Positions 1,018 to 25,341 of a stretch of 25,341 bases of DNA are shown piece by piece. The position numbers and the translations under genes were made by a program. The notes under the pieces are model-generated. The model was not told where the DNA came from, made no database searches, and saw nothing but the letters and a program-made list of their open reading frames with translations. The stretch is taken from the NCBI GenBank assembly GCA_964035545.1, contig CAXIUT010000182.1, positions 1 to 25,341 on the forward strand, in the 5' to 3' direction. The stretch comes from Bugula neritina (taxonomy: Eukaryota > Animalia > Bryozoa). How positions within the stretch are numbered: the first letter of the stretch is position 1; each line of letters starts with the position of its first letter.

Positions 1018-3920
1018 ATGAAGAAGAAGATAGACAGTCGGATTCAAACATTGATTTAGAATGGTTATAAATCAAACCAAAGGACTATGCTGATGATAGT
1101 GGGAGATCGTGCTCGATACCAGGTGGTGAATTTACATTACATGTTATCGAAATTATCAACAACAAGAAACAAACCTAAGGTACTCTGGTGCTACAAATCT
1201 TAACTTTAATTTTCTAGTCATCAAAAAAAAAGAATGAAAATGGTTAAAAATATGCAAACGAAAGGACTATATGATTAAAATGTGGATGACCCCTTCTAGT
1301 TGTTTATCGGATCCACTTAAATCAGGTATACCTACTACAAATAATCTCACAAAATACTAGGAAATACCTATCAAATGCTTATCCTACAAGACTTTGAGGC
1401 ACTAAACCCTAACTTGCTCTGTAGGACTATCTAGACAGTTGAAGGCGGAGGAATTATAGTCTTTTTGATGAGAACTATGACCAGTCTTAAACAGCTCTAT
1501 ACCCTAACAATGGACGTACATCAAAGGTACAGGACTGATGCTTTCTAATAAATATAGCCTAGATTCAACTAAAGATTCTTACTATCCTTGAGTAAAAATA
1601 AAAATTGCATCATAATGGACGACGAACTCAATATTTTGCCTATTTCTGGACATATTGACGATATCAAGCCTCTCTAGTCCAAGACTATTATCGATCACAA
1701 AGTTCAAGAAGAATTATAGTCTTTGAAGAAAGGGCTATAGACCAAATAGATCATAGGTAAGTTGATAAATAAGTCTAAGACGATGGACCAGGCCAAAATA
1801 GTAATGACTTTGGTTGATATATTAAACGAAAAGAGCAATAAATCGACTGTGTCTGTGACGGCAGGTCGAGGTCGAGGTAAATCAGCATCAATAGGTCTAT
1901 GTTTAGCTAGTGGTATTGAGATGGGCTACAGCAATATATTTGTGACAGCTCCTTCTCCTGAAAACTTGAGGACATTGTTCGAGTTTGTTTGTTTGGGGTT
2001 ATAATGTTTAGAGTACAAGTAGAGACAAGATTTCGATAGAGTTTACAGTACCAATAAATAGTATGATAAAACTATAATAAGGATAGATGTCTATAAACAT
2101 CATACACAGTTTATACAATTTGTATTTCCCAACGATGCTGATAAAATTGGACATACTGATTTGGTTGTTATTGACTAAGCCGCAGCTATTCCACTTCCTT
2201 ATGTTAAATCATTCTTTGGCTCACATCATCTCTTCATGGCTAGCACTATCAATGGCTATGAGGGCACTGGCCGCTCATTGTCTTTGAAACTTATAGAATA
2301 AATAAGACAAAAAAATGCCAGAGGAGGCAGTTAGTTGAACAGTTATAAAAAGTTCAAAGAAATGACCATGACTGATCCCATAAGGTATGCACTAAACGAC
2401 TAGATCTAGCGATGGCTCAATGAATTACTTCTTTTGAATGCTACTGAAGCTGTAGCATTGAAGGGAGAGAGGTTGCCTCATCCTAGTGAGTGTGAGTTAT
2501 ATATTGTAAATAGAGATACTTTGTTCAGTTATAAGACAAGTAGTTAAAAATTTTTATTTAACTTGATGTCTCTATTTATATCCTCTCATTACAAGAATAG
2601 TCCAAATGACTTGCAACTGCTATCAGATTCACCCTCGCATTTGATATTTGTACTGCTGGGACCATTGCTAAAAAATTCATAAGGAAAGGTGGAGTTGCCT
2701 GATGTATTGTGTGCTGTTCAGTTGGCCTTAGAGGGAAATTTATCAAAAATAGCTATAAATCATAACACTCAAAGAGGAATAAAGCCATCAGGAGACTTGA
2801 TTCCTTGGAATATAAGATAGCAATTTCAAAATAGTTAGTTTCCCTAGCTAGCTGGCGGGAGAATAGTGAGGATAGCTACTCATGCTAAAACTGTTAAAAT
2901 GGGTTATGGATCTAGAGCTTTATAGCAACTTAGCGACTTTTTTGAGGGGAAGTTAGTTTCTCTTGACAAAGAAGTCGATATGTACCACTGTTATAGTATA
3001 GAGTTGATTATGATTTCAGAGGAGAAGGAGTTAGAAAGCCTTTGCTTAAAAAATTGGATTAAGTCAGACCTCCAACTCTTCACTACCTAGGAACATCTTT
3101 TGGATTCACTTAGATATTACTTAAGTTTTGGAGAAAAAACAAATACTAGCCAGTGTATTTGAGACAGACTATTAATGATATAACTTCTGAGCATAGTGGT
3201 ATAATGTTGAAGGCACTATAGAATAGTGAGAAGAAGATCTGTTTGGATGAATTCGTATTTGATTTTAAGAAGAGGCTGACTAATTTATTAGGCTACTAGT
3301 TTAGAAAGCTAAATGTTGGTTTGGCTTTGTAGATACTTCATTTTAAGAGAGTGGACCTTCCTTCAGATTAAGCTGAGTCTAATTTACTTGAGAGAGATAT
3401 TTTGGCTTATTTTATATCTTTGGCTGACATGAATCGCCTCAAAAGTTATACTAGAAATCAGGTCGACTACCATTTGATTGTTGACTTGATTCCAGTTATA
3501 TCTAAGTTGTATTTTACTGGTAGACTTGGAAAATAACTTAACTTAGGTTATATTAACCAAGCCATTTTGGTTGGCCTAGGACTGCAAATGAAAACCTTTG
3601 ATTAAATATGTAAAGATCTAAAAGATCTATAAGTTAAAAATGCTCTACCTATCTTTCAAAAAACTATGATTAAATTTTATAGATTAATCTAGAAGTGCTA
3701 TAGTGTACTATTTGATATTATATAGAAAGAGGCTGTGAGTAAGTTACCTGAACAGATGGCAGCCAAGGGAAACAGAGTATTACCTCAGAAGGGAGTCGAG
3801 ATGGATGACAATATAGAACTAAATGCTGAATTATTGGCTGAATAGAAAGTTGAAGGATCTAAAAGGTTGTTTTCTAGAGATAGTGAGAAGATTTCAGGGA
3901 AGAAGAAGGTTAAATTATGA
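1018..3920 (+). CDS. NAT10: RNA cytidine acetyltransferase NAT10/Kre33
   Basis: MKKKIDSRIQTLIENG...VLWCYK...LQDFEALNPNLLCRTIETVEGGG...TAGRGRGKSAS...VVIDEAAAIP...STINGYEGTGRSLSLK...SSHYKNSPNDLQ...PSGDLIPW...VYLRQT with TAR=Glu. One 20-nt intron (2982-3001) restores the frame. Ends TGA TGA. Confidence 0.97.
2982..3001 (+). other. 20-nt spliceosomal intron in NAT10
   Basis: GTACCACTGTTATAGTATAG. Removal joins the upstream frame to the conserved RKPLL...LHYLGTSFG frame. Confidence 0.88.
3705..3725 (+). other. candidate 21-nt in-frame intron in NAT10
   Basis: GTACTATTTGATATTATATAG matches the GTAC...TAG pattern but is 3n and stop-free, so frame does not require it. Confidence 0.5.
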
Positions 3921-3984
3921 TGATTTACTTATCAAGTTCGATTATAGGATATGAATGATAATATAATTATTAAATTGGCGGCAA

Positions 3985-5199
3985 ATGTAGTAACCACACC
4001 CAGTAGTCGACACCACTCTTAACGCGAATATAACCAAAGAGTTGATATGGAGAAGAAATGCTCCTTACTTCTATCAAACTCTATACACACAAGTTTTGGA
4101 GTGGCCTTCTTTAGCTATCGAGTGGTGGACTGATGAATATTCTAGTTCTACTGTCCATAGTAGCAAAGAAGAGAAGTCACTTTGTTATGTCACTTATGGC
4201 ACCCACACCTCTGGGTCAGATAAAAACTACCTTATCATGGCTAAAGTATATCTCCCTAACCAGCAATACATCAAAAAACTTCATCGATAAAGTAAACATA
4301 AAGCTATGATAGAAACTATCAAGCCTAGTGATGCTATAAAGAAAAACGATGGCACAATGGAAGATAGGATAGTTGTGCAACATGAAGTATAACATGATGG
4401 TGAAGTAAATCGCATCAAACACCATCCAAGGAAAACCAACCTGATAGCAACAAGGACTCCATTGGGTGAGGTGCATATCTTCGATAAGACCACTTTCAAG
4501 ACGGGAAGAGTCAAAGTAAATCCTTCAATAGTGCTGATGGGTCACTAGACTGAAGGATACTCTCTTTAGTGGAATCCCCATCGAGACGGCTATATTGTGG
4601 CTGGCAGCTATGATGGCAACTTGACTCTTTGGGACATATCTACTAAAGAATAGAACAATAGAGTGCAGCCTCTGTGCTATTTCAATTACCATCAGAAATA
4701 GATTGAGGATGTGAGTCATAACCAGTATCATGATTGTATATTTGGTTCATGCGATGATGAAGGCCAGGTGGTCTTATGGGACACTAGAAATGCTAAATAC
4801 CCTGTCTATCACTTCCATGCTGATAAGTCATAGTTATATTCTATTCAGTTTTCTCCAATGAATAGAAATATCTTCTGTACTGGTGGAACTTAAAAAACTA
4901 TCAAACTATGGGATGTTAGAAATATGTCAGAGCCAATAGCCCTGATGAAAGACCTCAACAACTAGTAAATAACTCAATTGAAATGGAGTCACACCTAGAA
5001 AGAGATGTTGTGGTCTGTGAGTGGCAACAGTTTGACTATGTGGGACTTGAATGACGCTAAGGCTAAATTCGTTCATGCCGGTCATATGCAAAACATCAAC
5101 CAAATCGACCTGCATCCAATCGAACCAAGAACTGTTGCTTCTGTCGATAACTAAAATTAAATACATGTGTTTCAGCCTTCTAAAAATGCAACTATATGA
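3985..5199 (+). CDS. RBBP4/MSI1/p55-like WD40 histone-binding protein (404 aa)
   Basis: Starts ATG TAG TAA (MEE). IWRRNAPYFYQTLYTQVLEWPSL, GTHTSGSDKNYL, HDGEVNR, GHETEGYSLEWNP, LWD repeats, FVHAGH. Uninterrupted frame ending TGA TGA. Confidence 0.92.
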
Positions 5200-5245
5200 T
5201 GATCAAATTTAACTATTATTAATTTATTTATGCATTGAGTGATAA

Positions 5246-8200
5246 TCATTTCTGCTGACTCAAATTCTACTTGTTTACATCTTCAACTGTTAATTGCTTT
5301 ATCTCTTATACCCTTTTCAAGTCTTATACTTGAGGCCTTTTCAAGTCTTATACTTGAAACTTTTTCAGCTCTTAAACTTGAGGCTTTTTCAGGTCTTATA
5401 GTTGAGGCTTTTTCAAGTCTTACAATGGGGTCTTGGTACCATATGCTGGCTTTAAGCTACTGATATAGCTATGAGTTTTTATGGTACTTTTTTGTTCTGT
5501 TTTTATTTTTTTCAATTAGTTTTTGTATTTTTCTTAATTTTTTTAGCATTTTTTGATTTTATCTTTAAGATTGCTAATTTCTTAGTTCATGAGATCTTTT
5601 TAGTAATTCCATTTGGATCTTTATTTTTCTAGTTAGAATTTGATGGTCATTTTTTATTGTTCTAGATCTTTATTTTTGATTTAGATGAGATTCATTTTGT
5701 TTTTATGGTTTTATTTTTCCTGACTTTATTTTTTAAGATATTAATTATCTTTTTATTAATTAGCGTTTCTTAATCTTTAGGTTTATTATCTTAATTTTTT
5801 TTAATTTTGTTATTTTTAGTGTTCCAATTTATCTAGTTTCATACTATAGAACTATTTTTGATTTCTTTCTAATTAATATTTTTATCTTAACTATTTTATT
5901 AATTGTTCTCTTTATTTTATATTTATTCTGTACTAACTTAGATTCTTTTATACTTAACTTTTCAGCTATGTTATTTGGCTGGTTAGTTTGGTCTAAGTTA
6001 CTCTTATTGTCTAGTTATAAGTATTATTAGCTGCATTTTTCTAATTATTTCTATAAGTTCTAATGTTCTATAATTAAAGTTACAAGTTCTTTATTCTTTA
6101 CTAGCTATCTTTCTTATTCTCATCTTTTGATTTTGTTAAAAACTATATTCTTTGCTCATTTAAACTGTTTTGCTTTTATGATTATAGTTTTAGGACCTGA
6201 TGATCATTTTATAGTTTCTAAAAATCATGTCTTGTTTTCTTTATCTATCTCTAGTAACTATCTCTTGTACTATTTATTGTCTATTTTTGTTGAGACACTT
6301 GCAATTTGAGTTTATTGATTTAAGACTATTTCTATTTTTAATAACTTTTATATTTCTATTCGGCTCTAGTTATTCTGATGTTTAAATCTTATTTTTATCT
6401 TGAAAACTAATTCATGTGTTTAAGATATTCTGCATCTTTTTATTTAGATACTGTTTTGAGAGATCGATATTTGGTTTAAAGTTATCTTTTTTAATTATTT
6501 ATTTTTTATAAGTTATTTTTATACTCCAATTCTTTTTATTCTTTATAATTAGCCATCTTTTATTCATAATTGCGATCACTTATTTATATTTTATGTTAAA
6601 GTTATTTGCTATTGTTGAAGAAATCTTTTTGAGTTAACAAGCATTTTGAGTTTAGAAGTTGGATAGTTTTTTAGTGATTTTACCTTATATTTGTGCATGT
6701 TTTGATTCTTAGTTTTTCATTTTATGTTTATAAATTTTGCTTTAAAGAGATAAACTCTCTCTATAGATCAACTAACTTCCTCTATTTAGTCTATGAAGAA
6801 TTATAGTAGTTATCTCTTTAATGAGTAAGATCTAAATTCTATTTTTATTTATCATTTACTTTCTTATGTAATTCTTCTATCTTTCTCTACCAATTTTTAT
6901 TTATCTACTTTATATTAACTATTCAATGTCTAATATCTATAGTTGAAATCCAACTCTTTCTTTTATAGTTCTTATCTTATCTGCTTATATTGCTTTTATA
7001 ATGTTTATAGTTTCTTTGTGGTGTTATCTAGCTATTATTGCATCTTTTTGGTCGTGTTAGCCAACATTTCTTCAGTATTTGATTTCTTTCTTTAAGTTAT
7101 TATATCTAATTTCTATATTCTTCAGCTTATTCCTTCGAGTTTCTTTTAGTGTTCATCATTTAACTCATCTATTCTATTCTCATATTTATCTTTCCTACTT
7201 TCTCAACCTTCTCTATAAGTTCTCTTTCTCAAGCTCATAATTATTTCTATCTGAGCAATGTTCTGATCGCACACTCGACCCAAATCACTCTTCTCATTCT
7301 CTGCCTTCTACTTCACCTCCTATATCTCATTCTATAGTTAACTTATCCTTTTCTTCATGTGAGCTATCATCTTGAAGTTTTGACTTTATTTCTCATGTTT
7401 TTATGATTTTTGAGTAGTTTCAAGATGAATGAGATTTCTTTTATATTCCTCAATAGCATTTTGACTCTCTATCTTTAAATCTTAATATTCTTTTGATATT
7501 TTTTTAAGTTCCTCCTACAAAGACACCTTCTACTATCTCATAGTTTCCAGTTCAAAGTTAAGTTTTGTACAAGTACTTTAAAAGGTACTTTTCATGGAGG
7601 TTATTTCCATCTAACATTAGCTTTTATTGATGTTATTTGTATTTTCACTGTTTATTAATTTTTGTTTTGATAATTTTTTTACATATTCTCAATATTCCAT
7701 TTATGTTTTTATTTCATCTGTTTATAATTTTATTTCAATGTCTCAAACTCTACGTGTTCCATCTAGTTCTTTTGTTTTTAAAGACTTAGTTATTTCTAAT
7801 AGTCAGCTTGAGCAGTAGTTGAAGCATTCAATATTTATTTTATTTTTATTTCAAGTTATTTTACTCTTTCTGCACTAGAATTAGAACCATTATATAGTTA
7901 TTCTTTTAGTTTTAGAATTTTATCTTGAAGTTATTTTTTTTCTAGTTCAAAATTATATTTTATGTTTTAAAGTTATCTGTTTTTATTGTAAATATCATTT
8001 TTATAATTTTTTTATTTATCGTTAAAGTTTTAAAGTGTTTTGGTCATTTATTTATTTATTACTTCAAGTTATTTTTATAGATTTTATTGTTTTTATTAAT
8101 ATTATTTTATTCTTTTATTCAATTATTATTTTACCTTTATTTCCTTTAAGTTACTTCTTTTACCTTCTTTATCATCTAATTTTATACCTTGCTAGAATTT

Positions 8201-10101
8201 GTTTATAAATCTTTCTATTTCTTACTAAGTTTATTAAGTTTGATAGCTTAAATCTTTTATCTTAAAATCTAGTATTGTCTTTTATTTCTACCAAGTTCTT
8301 TTCTATTTATTAAAGTTACTTTAATTCTATTCTATCTTTACATCATCTCTCTCAACTTTTCCTTATAATATCTTTCTATTACTTTACTGTTCATGATATT
8401 TAGTTGAAAATTATCTTTACATCTTTCTTTACTATTATTCTTTTGATTTTGAAGTAAGTGATAATTGAGTGGATATTGTCTATATTTTATGACTAAGTTA
8501 TGATATCTTTTGATCACTTGAGTAGTAGATTCAATATATTATTTCTTTAGTTGTTATTTTTATTATTTAGTGATTAGAGTTGATCTGTTAATTATTTTTA
8601 TTTCGTCTTGAACATTTATTTGTCTTTTATTGATTTCTAGTAAAGTTTTGAAGAGAAATCTGCTCCTTGCGCTGATAATTTTTTCGTAGCTTATAAGTAT
8701 ATGACTTTGTAGTTATGTAATTTAGGACCTTATTGATTTAATCTTTAAGTAAGCACAGCTATTTCTTGTTAGAATTCAAAAAAAGTTTTATATTCTTGAT
8801 GATTTATTTTCTTTCTAATTGCTTGTACTTCTTTTATTATATAAGATCTTAAATTCTAATTTGATAATCTTATATTTTCCTCTTTAACTTATTTTGTCTG
8901 ATTCCTTATTCTTGACTTTAATTATTTCAGTACAAAAGCTGACTTCTATCCTAAGGCCTTTTATCTAAACGTTTATATTGCTTTCTCTCAGCTTCACTTA
9001 TTATTTTATAAAATTCTTCTTCAGGTTTAGGAAAGTCTCTAAACCCATCTTTTATTTCTTTGATAAATAACTCATAACAATCATCAAGTGATTTTTGACA
9101 TTGCTACTCACACATATAATTCCATGCATTCTATATATTAGGAACAGCTCCTTCGTTAATAGCACTAACATAAGAATTTATCATTGAACAATACATGTCC
9201 GTTAAGTTATTTATTTTGAAGACTTTTCACTTAGCTGAGGACAATATTCTCTTTCTAAAGTTCATTGCTTGTTGGACAAACTAAGGACGAAGTTCATCGT
9301 GACTCATTTTATCTAGGTTTTGTAGTTTTTGTTAATCAACAAGAGGTCTGATCATAGTAAAGCAATCTCTATCTTTAAAGAAAGCAGTTAGTAATCTTCT
9401 TATTCTATTCTTTTATTCAATGTCTTCTGAAAAGCCATTTTGAGGAGCTAAAGCCTTCTCAAGGTATTCTTTTGAATTTATAGCATTTCCCCTGAGCATC
9501 TTGTAGTTGAAGAGAAAAATCTCTTACCACCCAATAAAATGTTGGGAAAACATAAAGATATTTCATCTGGATCTTCTCCATCTTCCTATTGTCCATTGGC
9601 CTTCAGTTGAATGTTCTTAGTCAAGTTTACTACAAGACTCAAGTTTTGAAGAGCATTCTAGTCAATAGACCCAACAGAGTTATAGATAAAACAACTTGAA
9701 GCCCAAATATTGCTAAAGTAAAAATTTTAGTGTCATGAGTTTGATCTTCATCTAAGCTCCAATTCCTTAGGTATCGATGACGATGATGTTGATAGGGTCT
9801 CCATCTGACGATGTTCCTTTGATGGGAGTTCCCCAACACCATAGACCTTTAGTGCAAGGATTGACAGTAGGTCCAACTCCAAAGCCGTTGCTTCTGTTGA
9901 GAAGGACTCGGTTGAGAAGGTATGATTTTCCTGTTCTGTAGATGCCTGCAACAGATACAACAGAGATGGGTCCTTGTATGGCTTTGAAGAACTTGATGGC
10001 TTGGTTGGTGAGGACGTATTCTGAATAGATGAAGGAGTACTTCCTGTGTTTTAGTGGACTTAGACCATGGGGATGGCCTGTTCTATGAAGGGCGAGTCCA
10101 T
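5246..10101 (-). CDS. Guanylate-binding protein (GBP/atlastin-type GTPase) with very long coiled-coil C-terminus (~1600 aa), several apparent 1-nt indels
   Basis: MDSPFIEQAIPMVEVHENTG, intron, KYVLT...VAGIYRTGKSYLLN (P-loop), CTKGLW, IDTEGIG, FIYNSVGSIDE, WVVRDFSL, AINEGAVPNIENAW, then K/E-rich coiled coil to a TGA at 5248-5246. Continuity of the whole coiled coil was not checked codon by codon. Confidence 0.85.
5312..5423 (-). repeat. 24-bp coding repeat at the GBP C-terminus
   Basis: Encodes EDLKKPQL EDLKKPQV EELKKFQV EDLKRPQV EDLKR, with TAA as the first Glu of each unit. Confidence 0.85.
10021..10040 (-). other. 20-nt intron in GBP
   Basis: Minus strand GTACTCCTTCATCTATTCAG. Removal joins ATG 10101 to the GTPase frame. 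Confidence 0.88.
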
Positions 10102-10382
10102 GATTCAAATTCAAATTTATTTATATTGTTAGATAAATTCAAATTGATTTAAGAGTGTTTTAGTTTAATTCAAATTATAACCAAAACACAATAAATAAAT
10201 ATTAAACATCTAATATCAATCGATACTCTAGCACTAGACATTTAAATAATAATACTATATGGCAATAATATTTATGAAATGAACAGAATTGTTTAATAAA
10301 AATTATTAGCATGATCCAAAGAATAGTATCTTATCATTGGTTCATCATTAGTTATTAAATTACGACTAATATTTTGCTTTTT

Positions 10383-10553
10383 ATTTATTCATCTATCTGA
10401 ACTAAAATTTGTTATTCTATTAAGGTTAGCATTTATTCATCTATTTAAGCTAGCATTTATTGATCTATTAAGGTAAGCATTTGTTATTCTATTTAGGTTA
10501 GCATTTATTCATCTATTTAGGTTAGCATTTGTTGATCTATTGAGGTTGGCATT
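10383..10553. repeat. 24-bp degenerate tandem repeat, about 7 copies, possibly coding on the minus strand
   Basis: Unit ~TTAGCATTTATTCATCTATTTAGG. One minus-strand frame is open: MLTEIDEE-like octapeptides. Confidence 0.85.
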
Positions 10554-12619
10554 TCAGGATGGAAAAGTGTTTGAGGAGAGATTGTATCTCAAGTCGACAG
10601 AAGTTAGCACTACAACATTGGGATGATAATTTTTATGAGGCAATCTCGGTCCTCCTCCATAGAATTTATTTAAAAAATACCAAACTTCAGGAGATATTTT
10701 TTTATGCGATACACTCATATTCTAGACTATTTATTAATTGGAGATTGGTCCAGGTCGAGGGTGTCCAAATATTTTATATCCTTTCTTGTTTTATTTATAA
10801 ACAAAGCTTTTCCATTGCGACAACCAGTTTCTATTGATGTAGACCCACTATTTTTTATGGGAGAGTTTATCTGCAAAACTAGCCATTTATTTTTCTGACA
10901 TTTTGATATCATTTAAGCTGGTTAATTTGAGTTGACATTATTAGCACTGATCTTTATCCGACTGTATTGCTATTTGTCTTCCTCCAAATATTTATAGTAG
11001 ATATTTATATATTTCTATTGGTATTTTATGAGGTCCATTGGCTACTTTTGATTGACTGGGTTTTAATCTTCCATGGGAACAGACGAAGGGATTCACTAAC
11101 GGTGGTATCTAGCAGTGCTATTTGAGATAGATATTCCAAAAATCAGGTAAAGGCATGATTGGATTCACATTCACCTCTAGACAACTCATGATGTTGCGAT
11201 ATAGAGGTTGATTTTTAGGTTATGACCTTCTTCTAAACAATGCTATCTTTATATTTGATTTTGGCTTCTCCTTCTATTGAATACTCTAGTCACTAATACT
11301 CAGTTCTTTATTGCTTGCAAGGATGTGAGTAAAAAACCTTTTGTCTTTGCGACTGATACAGCCCAGATATTCGAATATAGTGTTTGTTGTTGGTTTTTTA
11401 TTATCTTTAATGTACTATCTTGTGTATTTGGACAGGTCTATTTGGTCAGGAAGGTCTATATTCAATCCGTTTATTTATTATCCAAATTAGAGGATGAGGT
11501 TGTTGGGCAGATTGACATAGTTTTTATATTGGCTTATTTTTGAATCACATTTCTAACATATAATTTTACCTTGTTCAAGCGACTGCACTTTGAGTTGGTG
11601 GCTATTTCTCCAGTTAAGAGCCTATTCAATCAAACCCTATAAGGCTCCTTTATAATTAGACTATTGAAAGAATTTGTTGTCATAACTCACTTTCAAACAC
11701 TCAAAACGATTTATAGTAGTCGACTACTGATGGCAATTGCTGCATATTTGCTACAAGACGCATTACCCTCCAAATATCTATTTGACGATATTGTAGTTTT
11801 TTGTTTTAGTTGACTTCCATTCGTCATATTCTCCATGGATGAGAGTAGAAGCAGGACAGGGCAGTTCTTAGAAATGGAATTACTCGAATAGTATTTTAAG
11901 CAAGTAGTAGAGGACTCTTTGGGGTGTTTTTAATGCATATTATTTAAAACTTTAATCTTGTCTTATCAACTACTCTTATAGCCTACTTGTGTTGTATATT
12001 CGATATCTACCTGACCAAATTGTGCCGATTGTTTATATGAGATGCTTTACCAGAAGGTCATCTATTTTTTAGAGGTCTGCGACTTGGGATATTTCAGCTA
12101 TCGTTGGGACGTAGGCTAGGAGTTGGAGGACTGAGTTGAGGTAGCCGGTTACTCCGTTGTTTTTTAGTCCGCAGAGTCCTCTTTTTTATTTTGAAAGGAT
12201 GGAGGGTACTAATAATTAGCTCCAAAGATGACTGATTCTGTTTGCATGGGCAGCAGCAGATGTTGTCTGATCCAGTAGGTATTTATTTTTTTGATCTTTT
12301 GTTTTTCTCATTGATAATCCTCAGTTAATGATTGTTTACTCGGTGTCGTCATGTACTTATTTTTGACAAATAGTGCAAAATATCTACAGTGTCTAGCAGT
12401 GTATCATCACTCGATGTGCTGTTTCTAATTCTATGCTGGGTATGGGGGGTACTTTAGCCATATGAGATGAGCTACTCTTTGGTGAGTTGCTTTTTAGCTT
12501 GAAGCAGCCATCCTGAGTAGAGTTTCGGATACGTAGAGACAGATCCAAGTGATTTTGTTGAGATTCGGGTTGAGGAAAGTGGGCTCGTTGTTATATATAT
12601 GTATGTGCTCACAAGTCAT
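10554..12619 (-). CDS. USP20/USP33-architecture ubiquitin-specific protease homologue (ZnF-UBP-like, USP, 2x DUSP), predicted inactive, in-frame TGA at 12323-12321
   Basis: MTCEH...WICLY...IFCTIC; Cys box RGLCGLKNNGVTGYLNSVLQLL; IVKEIFGG...ICSNC; ICEKC...LPNNLIL; DUSP motifs FVCSHG...IFGG and WLSQWKSFV...PGPISN...VWYFLNKFYGGGP. Confidence 0.8.
12513..12532 (-). other. 20-nt intron in the USP-like gene
   Basis: Minus strand GTATCCGAAACTCTACTCAG. Removal puts ATG 12619 in frame with the zinc-finger and USP motifs. Confidence 0.8.
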
Positions 12620-12774
12620 TTTAAATTATATATTATTTAGAACTCCAATTATCAAATACAAATGATATATAAGATAGTGCAATCTTAGATATTAATATAT
12701 TTATTGAAGGAAGTACTTTTGTTTTTTCTTGTGACTATTTATATCTTTATAGTGATAGATGAGGGATATGAAGA

Positions 12775-12957
12775 TCAGGAGGTCTACGAGGTATAGTTTT
12801 TGCTTTTTATTTATAAATATATCAAAATAAGGAAGAGAATTGATGCTAACATCAGTCCGTATTCGATGTGTTCAGCTCCAACTGCTCCTCTAAAGTAAGC
12901 AGAAAATCCTTTGTGTTATATTTATTCGATATCTCTATCTTTTCTTTCTTCTTTCAT
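12775..12957 (-). CDS. possible small membrane protein (60 aa, or longer if a 1-nt indel is corrected)
   Basis: MKEERKDRDIEEIEHKGFSAYFRGAVGAEHIEYGLMLASILFLILIYL. Higher GC than the flanks, with a hydrophobic segment. No family recognised. Confidence 0.35.
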
Positions 12958-13014
12958 TGTTTATTAATTATATGATAGCAGATGATTAATTTAATTTCTT
13001 ATATTTTAAATTAG

Positions 13015-14495
13015 ATGAGTAGTTAGGTAATTTCCAGCAAGATAAAATCTCAAAACAGTCGATCGCAGATGAGTTTCGAAGAGGTGTTGGATCCCAAGAA
13101 GAGGTATCAGATAGTGAACGAATCAGAGCGTGAGAAGGAAAGAAAGAAGGCTCATCGCAAAGATGAAATCAAAAAGAAACAATAAAATAAGGTACATAAG
13201 AAACATTTGATGCACTAATTGATTAAAAAACGAAAAGAGCTGTTAGAACTAGAGCAGGCAGAAGAAAGTGGGATTGTTACTGAGAATTAGGCTCAGAAGT
13301 GTGCGATAGTTAAATTGGAAAAAGATAGGATAAGGAAGCTATAAAAATAAATATAAATATAAAATGCAAACTAGCTAGCTGTAAATCGACAAAGATAGGC
13401 GTTAAAACGTTTATAGAAGTAGCAAAGATAGCTAAACTACAAGAATTAATAGGCAAAAAACCTTCGAAAAAAGCATTGTCAAAGTCAAAAGAAGTAAAGA
13501 GTCAATGCAGTGAAGTATTCTAGATCAATGGAGTACAATAAAACAGTAGATCAGAGAAATAAAAAGAAAAATAGTCAAACTCAAACTACTTATTATGTAA
13601 CTGGAATGAATAAACATGGAGTCCATAAGTAACCTCCTAACTCGTTTTCTAATCCTAACATCATCATAACAAAATAAAACTAAGAAGATAATCATGGTAG
13701 ATTTTATCTTATTTAGCAATGAGAAGAGCATAAAATTATAACAAAGCAAAATAAGAGCAGTAGAACTAGTTGAGTAAGAAGCAGGAAGATAATCGGAGGA
13801 AGGCAATCGAAAGGGGAGAGAAGGTAATGGCAGAAATGAGAAGATAACGTGAATATGATGAATACTGCAAGTAGACATAGAAGTAGCAGGTGAGATATAA
13901 TATGAAAAGGGTAGTTTGTGGCAGGTAGAATCAAAGGACGTATTGTTTGATATAATATAGAGGAGTAAAACCGATGACTCTGAGTCAAATGGAAATGAAC
14001 AAAAAGTTAAGAACTGAATAGGAGTTTTAACAAATATTTTTCAAAGGAAAAAAGATAGTCAAAAATACAAAAGTACTTAGTAAATATGCAATCACATAAA
14101 ACAAGATGAAAGAAGCAGTTGAAGTAAAGGAATAGATAAGACCAAAGCCAAGATAGCCAATTAACTATGTTTAATAATAAAGTTTGATTCCCAATGATTC
14201 TGATGGACACTATTCCTTTGAATAATAGCGACAGTGGAGTAAAGACCAATTGTAGTAGTTGCTAAAGTAGAGAGAGAACTAGTTGAAATAGAGAGAGAGC
14301 CAGTTTAAATAGAGAGAGAACCAGTTTAGATAGAGAGAGGACTAATTAAAGCCGATAATGAAGGAAACTAGTCCTAATTAGACAAAGAATAATTTGAAGA
14401 AGACTCGCGCTCCAGGTAGATAAAAATAAAACAAGGCCTAATTAGACTATTCTGATTCATAGGAGTAAGATTCTTAGGTCGTGTATGATAGGTGA
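13015..14495 (+). CDS. hypothetical K/E/R-rich coiled-coil protein (~480 aa)
   Basis: Open from ATG 13015 to TGA 14493-14495 under TAR=Glu after removing the 20-nt intron at 13697-13716. 21-bp KERENEL-like repeats near 14265-14345. Confidence 0.8.
13697..13716 (+). other. 20-nt intron
   Basis: GTAGATTTTATCTTATTTAG. Required to maintain the frame. Confidence 0.8.
13940..13960 (+). other. candidate 21-nt in-frame intron
   Basis: GTATTGTTTGATATAATATAG. T-rich island in purine-rich coding sequence, 3n and stop-free. Confidence 0.5.
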
Positions 14496-14576
14496 TATTT
14501 GATATTTGATATTTGATAAGTGTGATATATTTGATATATTTGATATATTTGATATATTTATATTTATATTATTATA

Positions 14577-15835
14577 TCAGGTGTGGTGTTTGGAGTTGAA
14601 GGCTGGTAGAGTGACTTCCATGAGTTTTAGCTTTTAGTAGTGTTATTTTTGTTTTCCTAGTTTATTTTCAATGTCGTATATTTTTAAATCATACTATCCA
14701 AAGGGCACTTTGTTATGATTTCTGATGGTTGATCTGGGAGCTATGCCGAATTGGTGGATCTTTTATGGTCTACGAGCAAATGACCCTTTGCTTTTGAACT
14801 TCATATCGTCTTACTTTATCATAGTGAATCTGTTTTGCATGTATTGACCTGGACCTGGCAAACTTATCTATCTATATCATAGATTAGTACTTTTCTAGGT
14901 TAAGTAGAGACAAATCTTTAGGCTTTGGATATCGTTCCTAAAGGTTATTTTTTACCTATTTTTTATGAATCTAATATTTAGTAGTATCCAGGTCCTAACT
15001 AACTTAGTTTAGATGTCTTTCCTTCTGTATTGTCGATAGGTGCATAGTTGTAGTGCATTGATGATTTGGGGAGTTTATTTTAGACAGATTTTTAATGTTT
15101 TTCTGTTGAATATGAGCCAGGTCCAATTATATGTGAAGACGAATTATTATGTATCAATTCAGGTCTTCTACTTTTGGAGAGAAATACTGAAGTCATTTTA
15201 TCTATCTTTTTTACTATCGCATATTCTGTCTAATCGAATTTTACGACCTCATCTGGAATATCTTATTAATCTTATGGATTTTTTGACTTATTTTTGTTTA
15301 ATTTTTGATTTTTTGTTATCATTTCTTAAATAAAAGATTTAGGACTCTTACTTTTGAATACTGATAAAGCTGTACTATTATTCAATGACACAATTGGATT
15401 GTACTAGCCTGGTCCTACTTTATTTTTATTTGTTTTCTATTCCTAAAATCTAGATCCTTTACTCCAATTAGAATGGATATTACCAGGTTATTTCAATATT
15501 TATCCATACTCTCCAGGACCTAATCTACTTTGAGACATATTGTTAAGAGCAAATGAGAGTCGATTGCTGCCATAGATCCATGCATGTTATCTAGGCAGTT
15601 TCGTAGACTATTTATTTATTTTTTGATTTTTAGAATCCATTGTATTTTTCTATGTGATGATTGAAGTATAGGAGCCTGGACCGGGAGTTGATTGGATTGG
15701 GGAGTTGAATCTTTATACTTTAGAGATGAAGGTGTTTTTATTGATGGTTTGTGGCTGTTACGGGGGTGGTTTTGATAAACTTTTAGTAAATTTTTGAGAT
15801 AAAGTAGGGGGAGGCTACTGAAGATTGATTTTCAT
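14577..15835 (-). CDS. STPG/ODF3 (SHIPPO) PGPGxY-repeat axonemal-type protein (~410 aa)
   Basis: Repeated TPGPGSY, LGPGEY, VGPGEY, LGPGYY, LPGPGQY motifs. ATG 15835, TGA 14579-14577, one 23-nt intron. Confidence 0.85.
14868..14890 (-). other. 23-nt intron
   Basis: Minus strand GTACTAATCTATGATATAGATAG. The distal AG restores the PGPGQY frame, whereas the AG at 19 nt does not. Confidence 0.75.
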
Positions 15836-16063
15836 TATTTTTATTTATTAGTTTATAAACATAAAACATCAAAACCAATAATACTATAGTAATATTAAAG
15901 TAATACTAGTCATCTACTAGATAAACCATATTTAGCCATTTAGAAAGTATTTTAAACAATTGAATACTATTTATTCATGTGTTGCTGTTTTTATGAGATA
16001 ATAGGTTGTGAGTTATCAAATACATTTTATGATATATATTTATAGAGTTATTTAACGATATAG

Positions 16064-16855
16064 ATGGCAGAAGATAAAGTTAAAAAACGAGTGCATTCTT
16101 ATAAATCTAATAAACACAAATAATAGTCAAAGGAAAATTCTCTAGTCAAAAAGAAGAAAGTCGATCGTAAAAGAGTGTTATCATCCAATATGATTCATAA
16201 GTCAACTGTCAAAAGCCAATCAGTAATAGACAAGACAAGTCAATCAGTTATAGACAAGACAAGTCAATCAGTTATAGATAAGACAAGCAAAATATCAAAA
16301 AGATAACAATCATGCTAGTAGCAATTGCATCCTCACTTCATGACTGTAGCTGATTTGATTGATACTGGAGGAGATAAGTTAGTAGAAACGCCTGTAAACC
16401 AATACCAGTAGGATTCTTACTTGAAAGTGGATGAGAGTAGTCGATAGATGGGTAAATCTCATGGCTCATATCCATTAGATGCGGTTGATAAATTCTAGCA
16501 GACAATAGGCAAGTTAAAAAGCAGACAGGACACCATGGATGTACTTAATCGGACAAAGAATACTCGGCTGGTCGATACAAGTGCCAACAGGTTGTCTTTG
16601 TCTAAGAAGTTGGACATGTATGAGGTGGAGATTAATTTTTATGTGGATAAGATATCTCAGTTGCAGAAAGAACTGCATTAAAAAAATAAATCAAACAAAG
16701 GTGATAGAAATGGATAGTTTTAGATTGTAGTTAAAAATAATAGAAAACTAATTGGAGAGAATCATCGGCTGAGAGAGGAAAAAGAACTTTTGGAAAGATA
16801 AAATTTAGCCTTGAAGAAAGTTTTGGATAAACAGTTTGATAAAACGATGCATTGA
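16064..16855 (+). CDS. hypothetical protein (263 aa), C-terminal coiled coil, three SQSVIDKT repeats
   Basis: Uninterrupted ATG-to-TGA frame under TAR=Glu. 24-bp repeat at about 16214-16288. Confidence 0.8.
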
Positions 16856-16934
16856 TAGTTATTCATATCTATTTTTAGCAGTCTTTATTGGCTACTTATT
16901 GTTTATTTGTTCATTTATTTGTTTCTATTTACTT

Positions 16935-17010
16935 ATTTGATTTGATTGTGATTGATTGTTATTTGATTTGATTGTGATTGATTGTTATTTGATTTGATTG
17001 TGATTGATTT
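16935..17010. repeat. 26-bp tandem repeat, about 3 copies, intergenic
   Basis: ATTTGATTTGATTGTGATTGATTGTT repeated upstream of SEC63. Confidence 0.85.
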
Positions 17011-17026
17011 ACGTGTAATACTATAG

Positions 17027-19006
17027 ATGTCATTTTTCCAACAGGAAGGTGATGATAGCAATCTTCAATACGATGACGCAGCATTTCTTTATTTTATCGC
17101 AAGTGCCCTTTCCCTTTCAGTTCTGGGTCTGGTCATATCAATAGTAAATGATCTTTTGGGTTTAAGATTTCAGCAGTAATGGAAATTTGCCAAATCCCCT
17201 ATCTTCAAGCATAAAATAAGAAAGGTGAAATCCTAAAAAAGAAGAATGAATTTAACAAGTAGCTTCTTATTGAAGTTATTGTCACTAGCATTGGTTTTAG
17301 TTTTGTTTATGTGGGTATATAACTAATCCCAAAAAGTATAAAACAAACTCAAAGGATTTGATCCTTACTAGATATTAGAGGTAACCAAAGAGGCATCTCT
17401 GTCTCAAATTAAAAAATCCTATAGAAAGTTGGCTTTGAAATACCACCCAGATAAAAACAAGGGAAACGCATAGGCTCAAAACAAATTCATACTGATATCC
17501 AAAAGCTACTAGTGCTTTACTAATTAATAAAAGAAAGCTAATTGCTTCAAATATGGCAATCCTGATGGTGTCTAGTCATATAGAGTTGGGATTGGACTAC
17601 CTAAATTTTTTATTGACGTAGATTATCAATATTACGTTCTTCCTTTAGTTTTAGTCATCTTGCTGGTGATTGTACCTGGATTGATGATCAGATGGAACAA
17701 CAAGACTAAAACTCTCGATCAGAATGGCATATCTGTTGGCAGTTATCCTACTTTATTCAAAGTGCTACAAACTCCAGTGGATAAATATAGTTTTCCTTAC
17801 ATAATGGCTGGATATCCATAGCTTTACTAGGATTAAAACTATGGTCCGATATCAGAGTAAAACAAAATAAAATTGATGTAACTCATAAAATAGAATCCTA
17901 GGTTGTAAAAACCAGTTCTACACTAGCTATCAGATAACCAGCTATTGATCTTATGGTAGGTATTGAAATACGCATGTCACTGTGGCTAATTCAGTGTACC
18001 TGATATGAGATATCGCTTTTAGGGATATTTGAATATGACTCTTAGCGTTATTCAAATGTTTACCATCAAATAACTTGATGGAAATATCCTCTACGGCAAT
18101 GTCGATTGGAAAGTTACCTATATAGGAGTCCCCATCTTCAATACCTTCATGGAATTTCAAAGAGATTTCTTCAATAGAACCCTCATCATACCCGCCACCA
18201 ACGATAACTGGATCTATGGCCTAAGTCTATCAGAAAATACGAGAGTCACTCTCAGAAAAGCTATCAGAAATGGTGGAGTTATGAACAATTTGTACGACAG
18301 TTTGAGCAACTAGTAGAGATTGAAGATTTTATGCGAGCAGATTCCTTCTGAGGAGAGGTAGAGTGTGGAGGGGCAGTTGAGGAGTTGGCCTGTGTACCAG
18401 TTATAGATGAAGATGAAGTTAGAGGGGAAGTAGATCACTTAGATGAGCAATTTGGATTTTACAATGTTGTATTTTAAGGTGATTCAGGAGAACAAGACTC
18501 CAGGTTTCAGTTATATTCACAATGAACCTATGCCAAGAAAAGACAAAATATTTGTTTTGGGACTCGATAACCAAGAAATAGTTTTTATCAGAGCAGTACT
18601 CATATCCTAAAGTAGATTGTTTTTAGAGAGAAAGAGAATAATTATGTCTTTAAGGTTCCCTTTAGAAGTGGAAAGATAGGAGAGCATTGTATGCGAGTAT
18701 TCGTTATTCACTAGACATGTTGGAATTTGGATATCGTGAAGGAGATGAAGTTTAGAGTGAGAGAAGCCTCTGCTGAAGAAGCAGTACCTATATTGTTATT
18801 TAGAATAAGCCTGTCCAATTTCATAAGGAAGATATAAATCTCGAGAGGATGTTTAAGACCTTTTTGAGGAGTTGATCGACTTGTCGATGGATCCCGAATA
18901 AAATTAGTTGTCGGATAGTGAAGAGTAATAGAAAAAAGAAGAACCTGGTCGAATAGAAGAGTAGTCTGAGAATTAAGAAGAAGAAGAGGAACACAGTGAT
19001 GACTGA
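17027..19006 (+). CDS. SEC63: Translocon J-domain protein SEC63
   Basis: [11 protein letters not shown], three hydrophobic segments, J-domain FDPYEILEV...[13 protein letters not shown]...KYGNPDG...VGIGLP, acidic tail. Two 20-nt introns and one apparent missing A near 18836. Confidence 0.93.
18596..18615 (+). other. 20-nt intron in SEC63
   Basis: GTACTCATATCCTAAAGTAG. Restores the open frame. Confidence 0.8.
18784..18803 (+). other. 20-nt intron in SEC63
   Basis: GTACCTATATTGTTATTTAG. Matches the pattern, but one further indel is needed to reach the acidic tail. Confidence 0.7.
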
Positions 19007-19018
19007 ATAAATAAATAA

Positions 19019-19065
<47 letters not shown>

Positions 19066-19070
19066 ATGAA

Positions 19071-19101
<31 letters not shown>

Positions 19102-19136
19102 ATGAATAAATAAATAAATAAATAAATAAATAAATA
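19006..19136. repeat. (AAAT)n microsatellite, about 32 units with a few GAAT variants
   Basis: Directly follows the SEC63 stop codon and generates the spurious YLFI-repeat ORFs in the track. Confidence 0.97.
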
Positions 19137-25272: not shown

Positions 25273-25341
25273 GGGGTTGGGGTTGGGGTTGGGGTTGGGG
25301 TTGGGGTTGGGGTTGGGGTTGGGGTTGGGGTTGGGGTTGGG
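25273..25341 (+). repeat. Telomere (TTGGGG)n, 11.5 units
   Basis: Perfect GGGGTT repeats to the last base with the G-rich strand running 5'->3' toward the end. Same repeat as Tetrahymena. Confidence 0.99.

Follow-up and report, generated by a model that had tools for sequence, protein, structure and literature searches.

The 25,341-nt contig CAXIUT010000182.1 (C191 here), one of 321 contigs in the 216-Mb assembly GCA_964035545.1 filed under the bryozoan Bugula neritina, raises the question of what TAA and TAG mean when they stand inside genes. The whole contig was analysed and is referred to as the window. A reading made from its letters alone (the sequence-only reading) had proposed that both triplets encode glutamate, that TGA is the only stop and that the DNA comes from a peritrich-like ciliate. 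As judged by sequence comparison, UAA and UAG serve as regular codons for glutamate and UGA is the only terminator, and we hold with high confidence that the window is a piece of a macronuclear chromosome of a ciliate cobiont of the sequenced host, with the peritrich code (NCBI table 30) in use.

The gene for NAT10 (RNA cytidine acetyltransferase), on the forward strand at bases 1018–3920, was recognised from a match to Pfam PF05127 in the piece at 1750–2001 and was aligned with 36 full-length homologues that had been found via a stop-free 84-residue piece. It ends in TGA (3918–3920) and includes 18 TAA and 25 TAG codons in frame, counted before the second of its two introns was removed; one TAG, at 3723, was part of the first tally and falls inside that 21-nt intron, in a column that is not conserved. 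All six of the codons on which the sequence-only reading had relied were found in frame at the positions it gave. Four are in NAT10, and the glutamate proposed for them was present in 16/26 homologues for QTLI[TAG]NGYK at 1057, 34/34 for CRTI[TAG]TVEG at 1432, 30/36 for PRFN[TAA]RFLL at 1570 and 35/35 for VVID[TAA]AAAI at 2176. The TAG at 1432–1434 thus occupies the invariant glutamate of RTI-E-TVEGGG, and the TAA at 2176–2178 the invariant Walker B glutamate of VVID-E-AAAIP, where a related ciliate (L071) likewise has TAA. Three further sites were added here, namely TAG at 2407–2409 and TAA at 2545–2547, both in invariant glutamate columns (34/34 homologues each), and TAG at 2020, where 31 of 36 homologues have glutamate. 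The remaining two cited codons, for which codon and frame were confirmed, are a TAA on the reverse strand at 9769–9767 (VIDT[TAA]GIGA), which lies in the G3 motif (IDT[TAA]G) of a GTPase gene, and a TAG on the forward strand at 17369–17371 (FDPY[TAG]ILEV) in a gene for a J-domain protein.

The meaning of every codon was then scored with a tally similar to that of Codetta, in which X was put in place of TAA and TAG and the reference residues were counted per codon, using the NAT10 homologues together with 120 partial alpha-tubulins. All 58 sense codons that had at least three usable columns were recovered with their standard meaning, and three rare codons fell below this threshold. TAA was scored as glutamate with a log-odds of +55.8, the next-best residue being aspartate at −38.8 (33 columns), and TAG as glutamate with +21.2, followed by lysine at −10.5 (27 columns). 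When only columns with at least 80% conservation were considered, the conserved residue was glutamate at 17/17 under TAA and 5/5 under TAG. CAA and CAG scored as glutamine and GAA and GAG as glutamate, in agreement with the earlier proposal that conserved glutamines here use CAA and CAG.

The tally also separates the glutamate code from two others found in ciliates, as the sequence-only reading had maintained, and both of these are rejected by wide margins. The usual ciliate code (table 6), in which UAA and UAG (UAR) both specify glutamine, is the commonest ciliate variant and a few variable columns do lean towards glutamine, including TAG at 2818 (19/33 homologues) and TAA at 2299 (16/35). 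However, glutamine scored −45.7 for TAA against the +55.8 of glutamate and ranked below lysine and aspartate for TAG, no conserved glutamine column contained TAA or TAG, and the suppressor tRNAs described below do not have the acceptor and D arm of a glutamine-type tRNA(UUA) from another ciliate or of the host tRNA-Gln. We therefore regard the glutamine code as highly improbable. A split code, with UAA as lysine, UAG as glutamate and UGA as stop, together with several suppressor tRNA genes, has been described in Oligohymenophorea sp. PL0344 (PMC10553269). It would share UAG as glutamate with the window, and the organism studied here is probably an oligohymenophorean, but TAA occupies 17/17 conserved glutamate columns and no conserved lysine column, lysine ranks below glutamate, aspartate and glutamine for TAA, and the two triplets interchange freely between orthologues. 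This makes the split code still less credible than the glutamine code.

Genes on other small contigs of the same assembly gave the same answer as the tally. In two alpha-tubulin paralogues, TAA or TAG stands at 12 of 14 (C16) and five of seven (C87) sites at which nearly all of the 120 homologues have glutamate, and the invariant glutamates written with TAA or TAG include those of MR-E, FFS-E-TGAGK, TVID-E-VRTG and WYVG-E-GME-E-G-E-F. A GAA in one paralogue is often opposite a TAA in the other. The ciliate eRF1 gene, found on the reverse strand of contig C314 (piece L001, bases 592–1926), includes 11 TAA and seven TAG codons in frame. Comparison with the eRF1 exons of the host placed five of these codons, one TAA and four TAG, opposite glutamate, in conserved motifs that include RLR-E-KRHNY and DF-E-PFKP.

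The distribution of open reading frames is consistent with UGA as the sole stop. Fifteen frames of at least 300 codons are present in the window when TGA alone is taken as a stop, compared with six for TAG alone, one for TAA alone and none under the standard code, for which the longest open frame is only 171 codons. The window is AT-rich (20–39% G+C in 1-kb windows), but this excess of long frames is not an effect of base composition because TGA and TAG each account for 2.2% of trinucleotides and yet the TGA-only frames dominate. The prediction that complete genes end in TGA held for all six complete gene models, a small sample made up of four models in the window, eRF1 and one of the alpha-tubulins, and none of them has an internal TGA. 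No TGA was found within the NAT10 and alpha-tubulin alignments either, and two apparent in-frame TGAs in related ciliates were due to alignments running through a conserved intron. UGA was thus never met as a sense codon in the six models or in any alignment. TAA and TAG together make up 41–69% of the glutamate codons in ordinary genes. The tubulins use them less: the beta-tubulin on C10 has none, and they supply 17% of the glutamate codons of the C87 alpha-tubulin. The C16 alpha-tubulin is the exception with 44%. Once TAA and TAG are counted as glutamate, the glutamate content rises from 3–4% to a normal 8–9%.

In-frame stops could also arise with no change in the code, through pseudogene decay, assembly error or RNA editing, and the contigs assembled from one sequencing run (X4) bear on this possibility. 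Three very short introns on the forward strand, each beginning with GTA and ending with TAG, are missing from the X4 contigs. Two interrupt NAT10, at bases 2982–3001 (20 nt) and 3705–3725 (21 nt), and the third, at 4292–4312 (21 nt), is in the RBBP4-like gene that follows it. Both 21-nt introns are in frame, so their retention would leave the reading frame unshifted. The three introns have been removed precisely in the X4 contigs, with the TAA and TAG codons unchanged, and the contigs otherwise differ from the window at two polymorphisms only, both of which are shared with other runs. The exact loss of the introns indicates that X4 is RNA. As TAA and TAG are retained in these spliced contigs, editing and assembly error are excluded as their source. 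The same TAA and TAG codons were present in independent runs from three studies, which show scattered single-base differences, none of them a change to GAA or GAG. In addition, these triplets fall specifically on glutamate columns, and the frames remain open in orthologues from five or more species. An explanation without a change of code can therefore be set aside as exceedingly improbable. The profile tally, the exchanges between paralogues and orthologues, the comparison with host eRF1 and the spliced contigs all bear out the meanings originally proposed for UAA, UAG and UGA.

Contigs from at least five related ciliates were found via public protein fragments; the proteins of these relatives are present in the public collection only as pieces of 56–162 residues. 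The contigs (L091, L095, L096, L101, L102 and L103) come from Logan run assemblies, ENA metagenomes and the assemblies GCA_020054605.1 and GCA_041443025.1. They share 70–75% nucleotide identity with the window over 4.2 kb, and the order NAT10 then RBBP4 (bases 1018–5199 in the window) is kept in at least five of these ciliates. Two NAT10 fragments considered as further relatives (L083 and L084) were rejected, as they are from unrelated organisms, one of which reads UAG as glutamine. In every relative TAA and TAG were scored as glutamate. Coding-frame alignments with three relatives were used to count the codons found opposite each triplet. The partners of TAA were glutamate codons (46), TAA (30), TAG (19), glutamine codons (10), aspartate codons (9) and lysine codons (5), while those of TAG were glutamate codons (32), TAG (30), TAA (19) and glutamine codons (9). 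This pattern mirrors that seen for GAA. Because TAA and TAG score as glutamate in all of the relatives and are exchanged in the same way as GAA, the code is a trait of the clade rather than of one genome.

The suppressor tRNAs that this code calls for were found in part. The assembly has two tRNA(CUA) genes, whereas tRNA(UUA) genes were seen only in related ciliates. Both tRNA(CUA) genes were detected by pattern search and are followed by an oligo-T run. One is on the forward strand of C10 (piece L036, bases 1469–1540) and the other on the reverse strand of C256 (piece L039, bases 1490–1561), where it adjoins a kinesin gene. The C10 gene is syntenic in two relatives (L106, bases 3525–3596, and L110, bases 3494–3565), where it closely follows a GH3 beta-glucosidase gene. 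All three copies have the same D arm and anticodon arm, and compensatory changes were seen within this family at the pairs 4:69 (T-A or C-G) and 50:64. The acceptor and anticodon stems of the C256 gene are strongly diverged. A scan of metagenome contigs revealed eleven tRNA(UUA) genes, ten of which belong to the same family, with a shared D arm and T arm; the other is a clear derivative of tRNA-Gln from a different ciliate. Three of the contigs with a tRNA(UUA) gene (L123, bases 4578–4649; L117, bases 7042–7113; L114, bases 4724–4796) also include an orthologue of the kinesin gene that adjoins the C256 tRNA, in the same divergent arrangement (geometry checked on L123), and in these kinesins TAA occurs within the switch I motif (N-x-E-SSRSH) and also occupies the position of the switch II glutamate (DLAGS-E). 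This locus therefore has a UUA gene in the relatives and a CUA gene here. As the assembly has tRNA(CUA) genes and the relatives have tRNA(UUA) genes belonging to this family, both putative decoders are present in the clade. Both tRNAs would be charged with glutamate, and a tRNA(UUA) gene would be expected to exist in this organism outside the assembled contigs.

The first matches to a UUA pattern in the assembly were rejected, as they were only tRNA-Lys genes of the host and an unusual tRNA of organellar type on C73, and the matches to a relaxed pattern were dominated by a host repeat. The unusual tRNA is present in two copies, has a 6-nt anticodon loop (TTTAAG), was left unnamed by ARAGORN and is not a nuclear UAA decoder. 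No canonical ciliate nuclear tRNA-Glu(UUC) gene was found on the small contigs searched.

On the side of termination, changes in the eRF1 of the ciliate affect the motifs that recognise stop codons. The three stop-codon recognition elements of eRF1 are NIKS, GTS and YLCDNKF. Each differs between the two organisms, with QIKD, GSV and YNCDSRF in the ciliate protein for NIKS, GTS and YLCDNKF, respectively, in that of the host. An eRF1 altered in this way may no longer recognise UAA and UAG, leaving UGA as the only codon at which it would act.

Several observations weigh against the interpretation offered here. The evidence for glutamate at UAA and UAG is at the level of DNA and of presumed RNA; X4 is not recorded as an RNA run and its RNA nature is deduced from the loss of the introns, and no run recorded as RNA was found to include this organism. 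In the C10 tRNA(CUA) of this genome, positions 4 and 69 of the acceptor stem are mismatched (A4.A69). The identity of the tRNA(CUA) to host tRNAs is 74% for Lys, 72% for Gln and lower for Glu, values that do not decide its isotype. No tRNA(UUA) gene was found in this assembly using the family pattern with two mismatches allowed, and TAA is nevertheless as common as TAG. Finally, no ciliate 18S rRNA gene was found in the assembly using a universal 18S core pattern, and a 5′-end primer pattern was also without result. The matches of the core pattern all had other sources: C6 and C135 carry the rDNA of the host, C9 a pseudo-copy of it, and C73 a small subunit (SSU) rRNA gene of mitochondrial type. 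Coverage of the ciliate genome in this assembly is evidently incomplete.

The assembly is made up of two kinds of sequence, the multi-megabase chromosomes of the host and many small ciliate contigs, including C10, C16, C87, C255, C256 and C314. The eRF1 gene on the host chromosomes is split by introns and has no in-frame stops, and the host 18S rDNA (1850 nt, 55% G+C) is arranged in tandem. The window sequence was also found in sequencing runs from three studies that are labelled with three different organisms, which indicates that the ciliate is a cobiont and not the organism that was sequenced. The window ends in a telomere of the G4T2 type, as had been noted from its sequence, with 11.5 copies of GGGGTT on the forward strand at the contig end (bases 25273–25341).

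This ciliate is likely to be a peritrich, a group with which its cobiont habit, its G4T2 telomere and the near-constant length of its tiny introns are all in keeping. Narrow intron-length distributions are described for three peritrich genomes (PMC13685798). Alternatively, the code could be the same while this ciliate and its five or more relatives lie outside Peritrichia, UAR having been reassigned to glutamate a second time in another oligohymenophorean lineage. No rRNA or named reference gives a placement, and no peritrich-named protein was among the NAT10 and alpha-tubulin matches, which were metagenome or Logan fragments or came from unrelated taxa. It is also the case that UAG came to specify glutamate at least once outside the peritrichs, in Oligohymenophorea sp. 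PL0344 (PMC10553269). However, UAA and UAG both read as glutamate have so far been reported only for peritrichs, and the G4T2 telomere, the narrow range of tiny introns and the presence of the sequence in runs with three organism labels all fit an epibiotic peritrich. A second origin outside the peritrichs is hence an outside chance, and an assignment to the peritrichs is preferred.

Other genes in the window also contain TAA or TAG in frame. The RBBP4/CAF1C-like WD40 gene (forward strand, bases 3955–5199; Pfam PF12265) includes eight TAA and eight TAG codons in frame and ends in TGA. The GTPase gene with TAA in its G3 motif resembles those for guanylate-binding proteins (GBP) and is represented by its 5′ part on the reverse strand at 9665–10138, with a match to Pfam PF02263 at 9770–10120. 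An open frame on the reverse strand at 10554–12320 has a weak DUSP match (USP/DUSP-like), with 21 TAA and 15 TAG codons and a TGA end. The membrane J-domain protein, encoded by an open frame on the forward strand at 17027–18739 with 13 TAA and 17 TAG codons, has an HPD motif and its gene also ends in TGA. It had been named SEC63 in the sequence-only reading, and in the two pieces of it searched no match to support that identity was found in Pfam. Three tandem repeats are present between genes, a 25-nt unit repeated 9.9 times (662–909), a 24-nt unit repeated 6.2 times just downstream of the USP-like gene (10383–10554) and 33 copies of AATA (19006–19136).

Elsewhere in the assembly, the host 18S copy on C9 (bases 1475000–1479500; piece L074) is 97% identical to the main rDNA and stops near position 1620. 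It is followed by a reverse-transcriptase-like open reading frame, and the 5′ part of a large subunit (LSU) rRNA gene lies upstream of it in head-to-head orientation. C73 (70.6 kb, 19% G+C) includes organelle-type SSU and LSU rRNA genes and is probably the mitochondrial genome of the ciliate. A small contig, C214 (~35% G+C), has at least 11 tRNA genes clustered in 1.2 kb and probably comes from another organelle or from a bacterial cobiont.

Gene callers that use the standard code would fragment the genes on cobiont ciliate contigs of this kind when these are left within a host assembly, and it is advisable to remove such contigs from the host sequence and to annotate them under table 30. As related contigs were found in two NCBI assemblies and in many runs and metagenomes, the clade may be a recurrent, unrecognised passenger in the genomes of other organisms. 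The analysis also yielded by-products relevant to the evolution of codes, namely a syntenic suppressor tRNA with compensatory changes, a locus with a tRNA(UUA) gene in relatives and a tRNA(CUA) gene here, and an eRF1 with QIKD for NIKS.

The code itself is already known, having been on record for peritrichs since 2003 and listed as NCBI table 30, and the 2003 report is said to have found TAA at invariant glutamate positions of alpha-tubulin. As originally proposed, the code of the window matches that table, with UAA and UAG as glutamate, UGA as stop and 58/58 other codons standard. According to two later sources, UAR as glutamate was first shown in 2003 on the alpha-tubulin of Vorticella and Opisthonecta and was subsequently confirmed in the transcriptomes of Carchesium and Campanella (PMC11687900; PMC4967479 citing Sanchez-Silva 2003). 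The codon meanings found here are the same as in these four genera, though they come from cobiont contigs, and what goes beyond the peritrich code itself is that a tRNA(CUA) gene is kept in synteny and that the eRF1 motifs are changed. Users of table 6 (Tetrahymena, Paramecium and Oxytricha) are alike in having UAA and UAG as sense codons, UGA as the sole stop and, when the relatives of this ciliate are included, suppressor tRNAs whose anticodons are UUA and CUA, and Tetrahymena shares the G4T2 type of telomere with the window. They differ in that the amino acid here is glutamate rather than glutamine, and the suppressor tRNAs found here are not like tRNA-Gln. The difference from Oligohymenophorea sp. 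PL0344 is that UAA also specifies glutamate here, and the introns are 20–21 nt in length as opposed to a median of 57 bp in that organism (PMC10553269). Tables 27 and 28 (Condylostoma and the karyorelicts), which lack a dedicated stop, are also ciliate codes in which UAA and UAG are sense codons, but in the ciliate represented by the window UGA is never found in frame and no gene model terminates at TAA or TAG.

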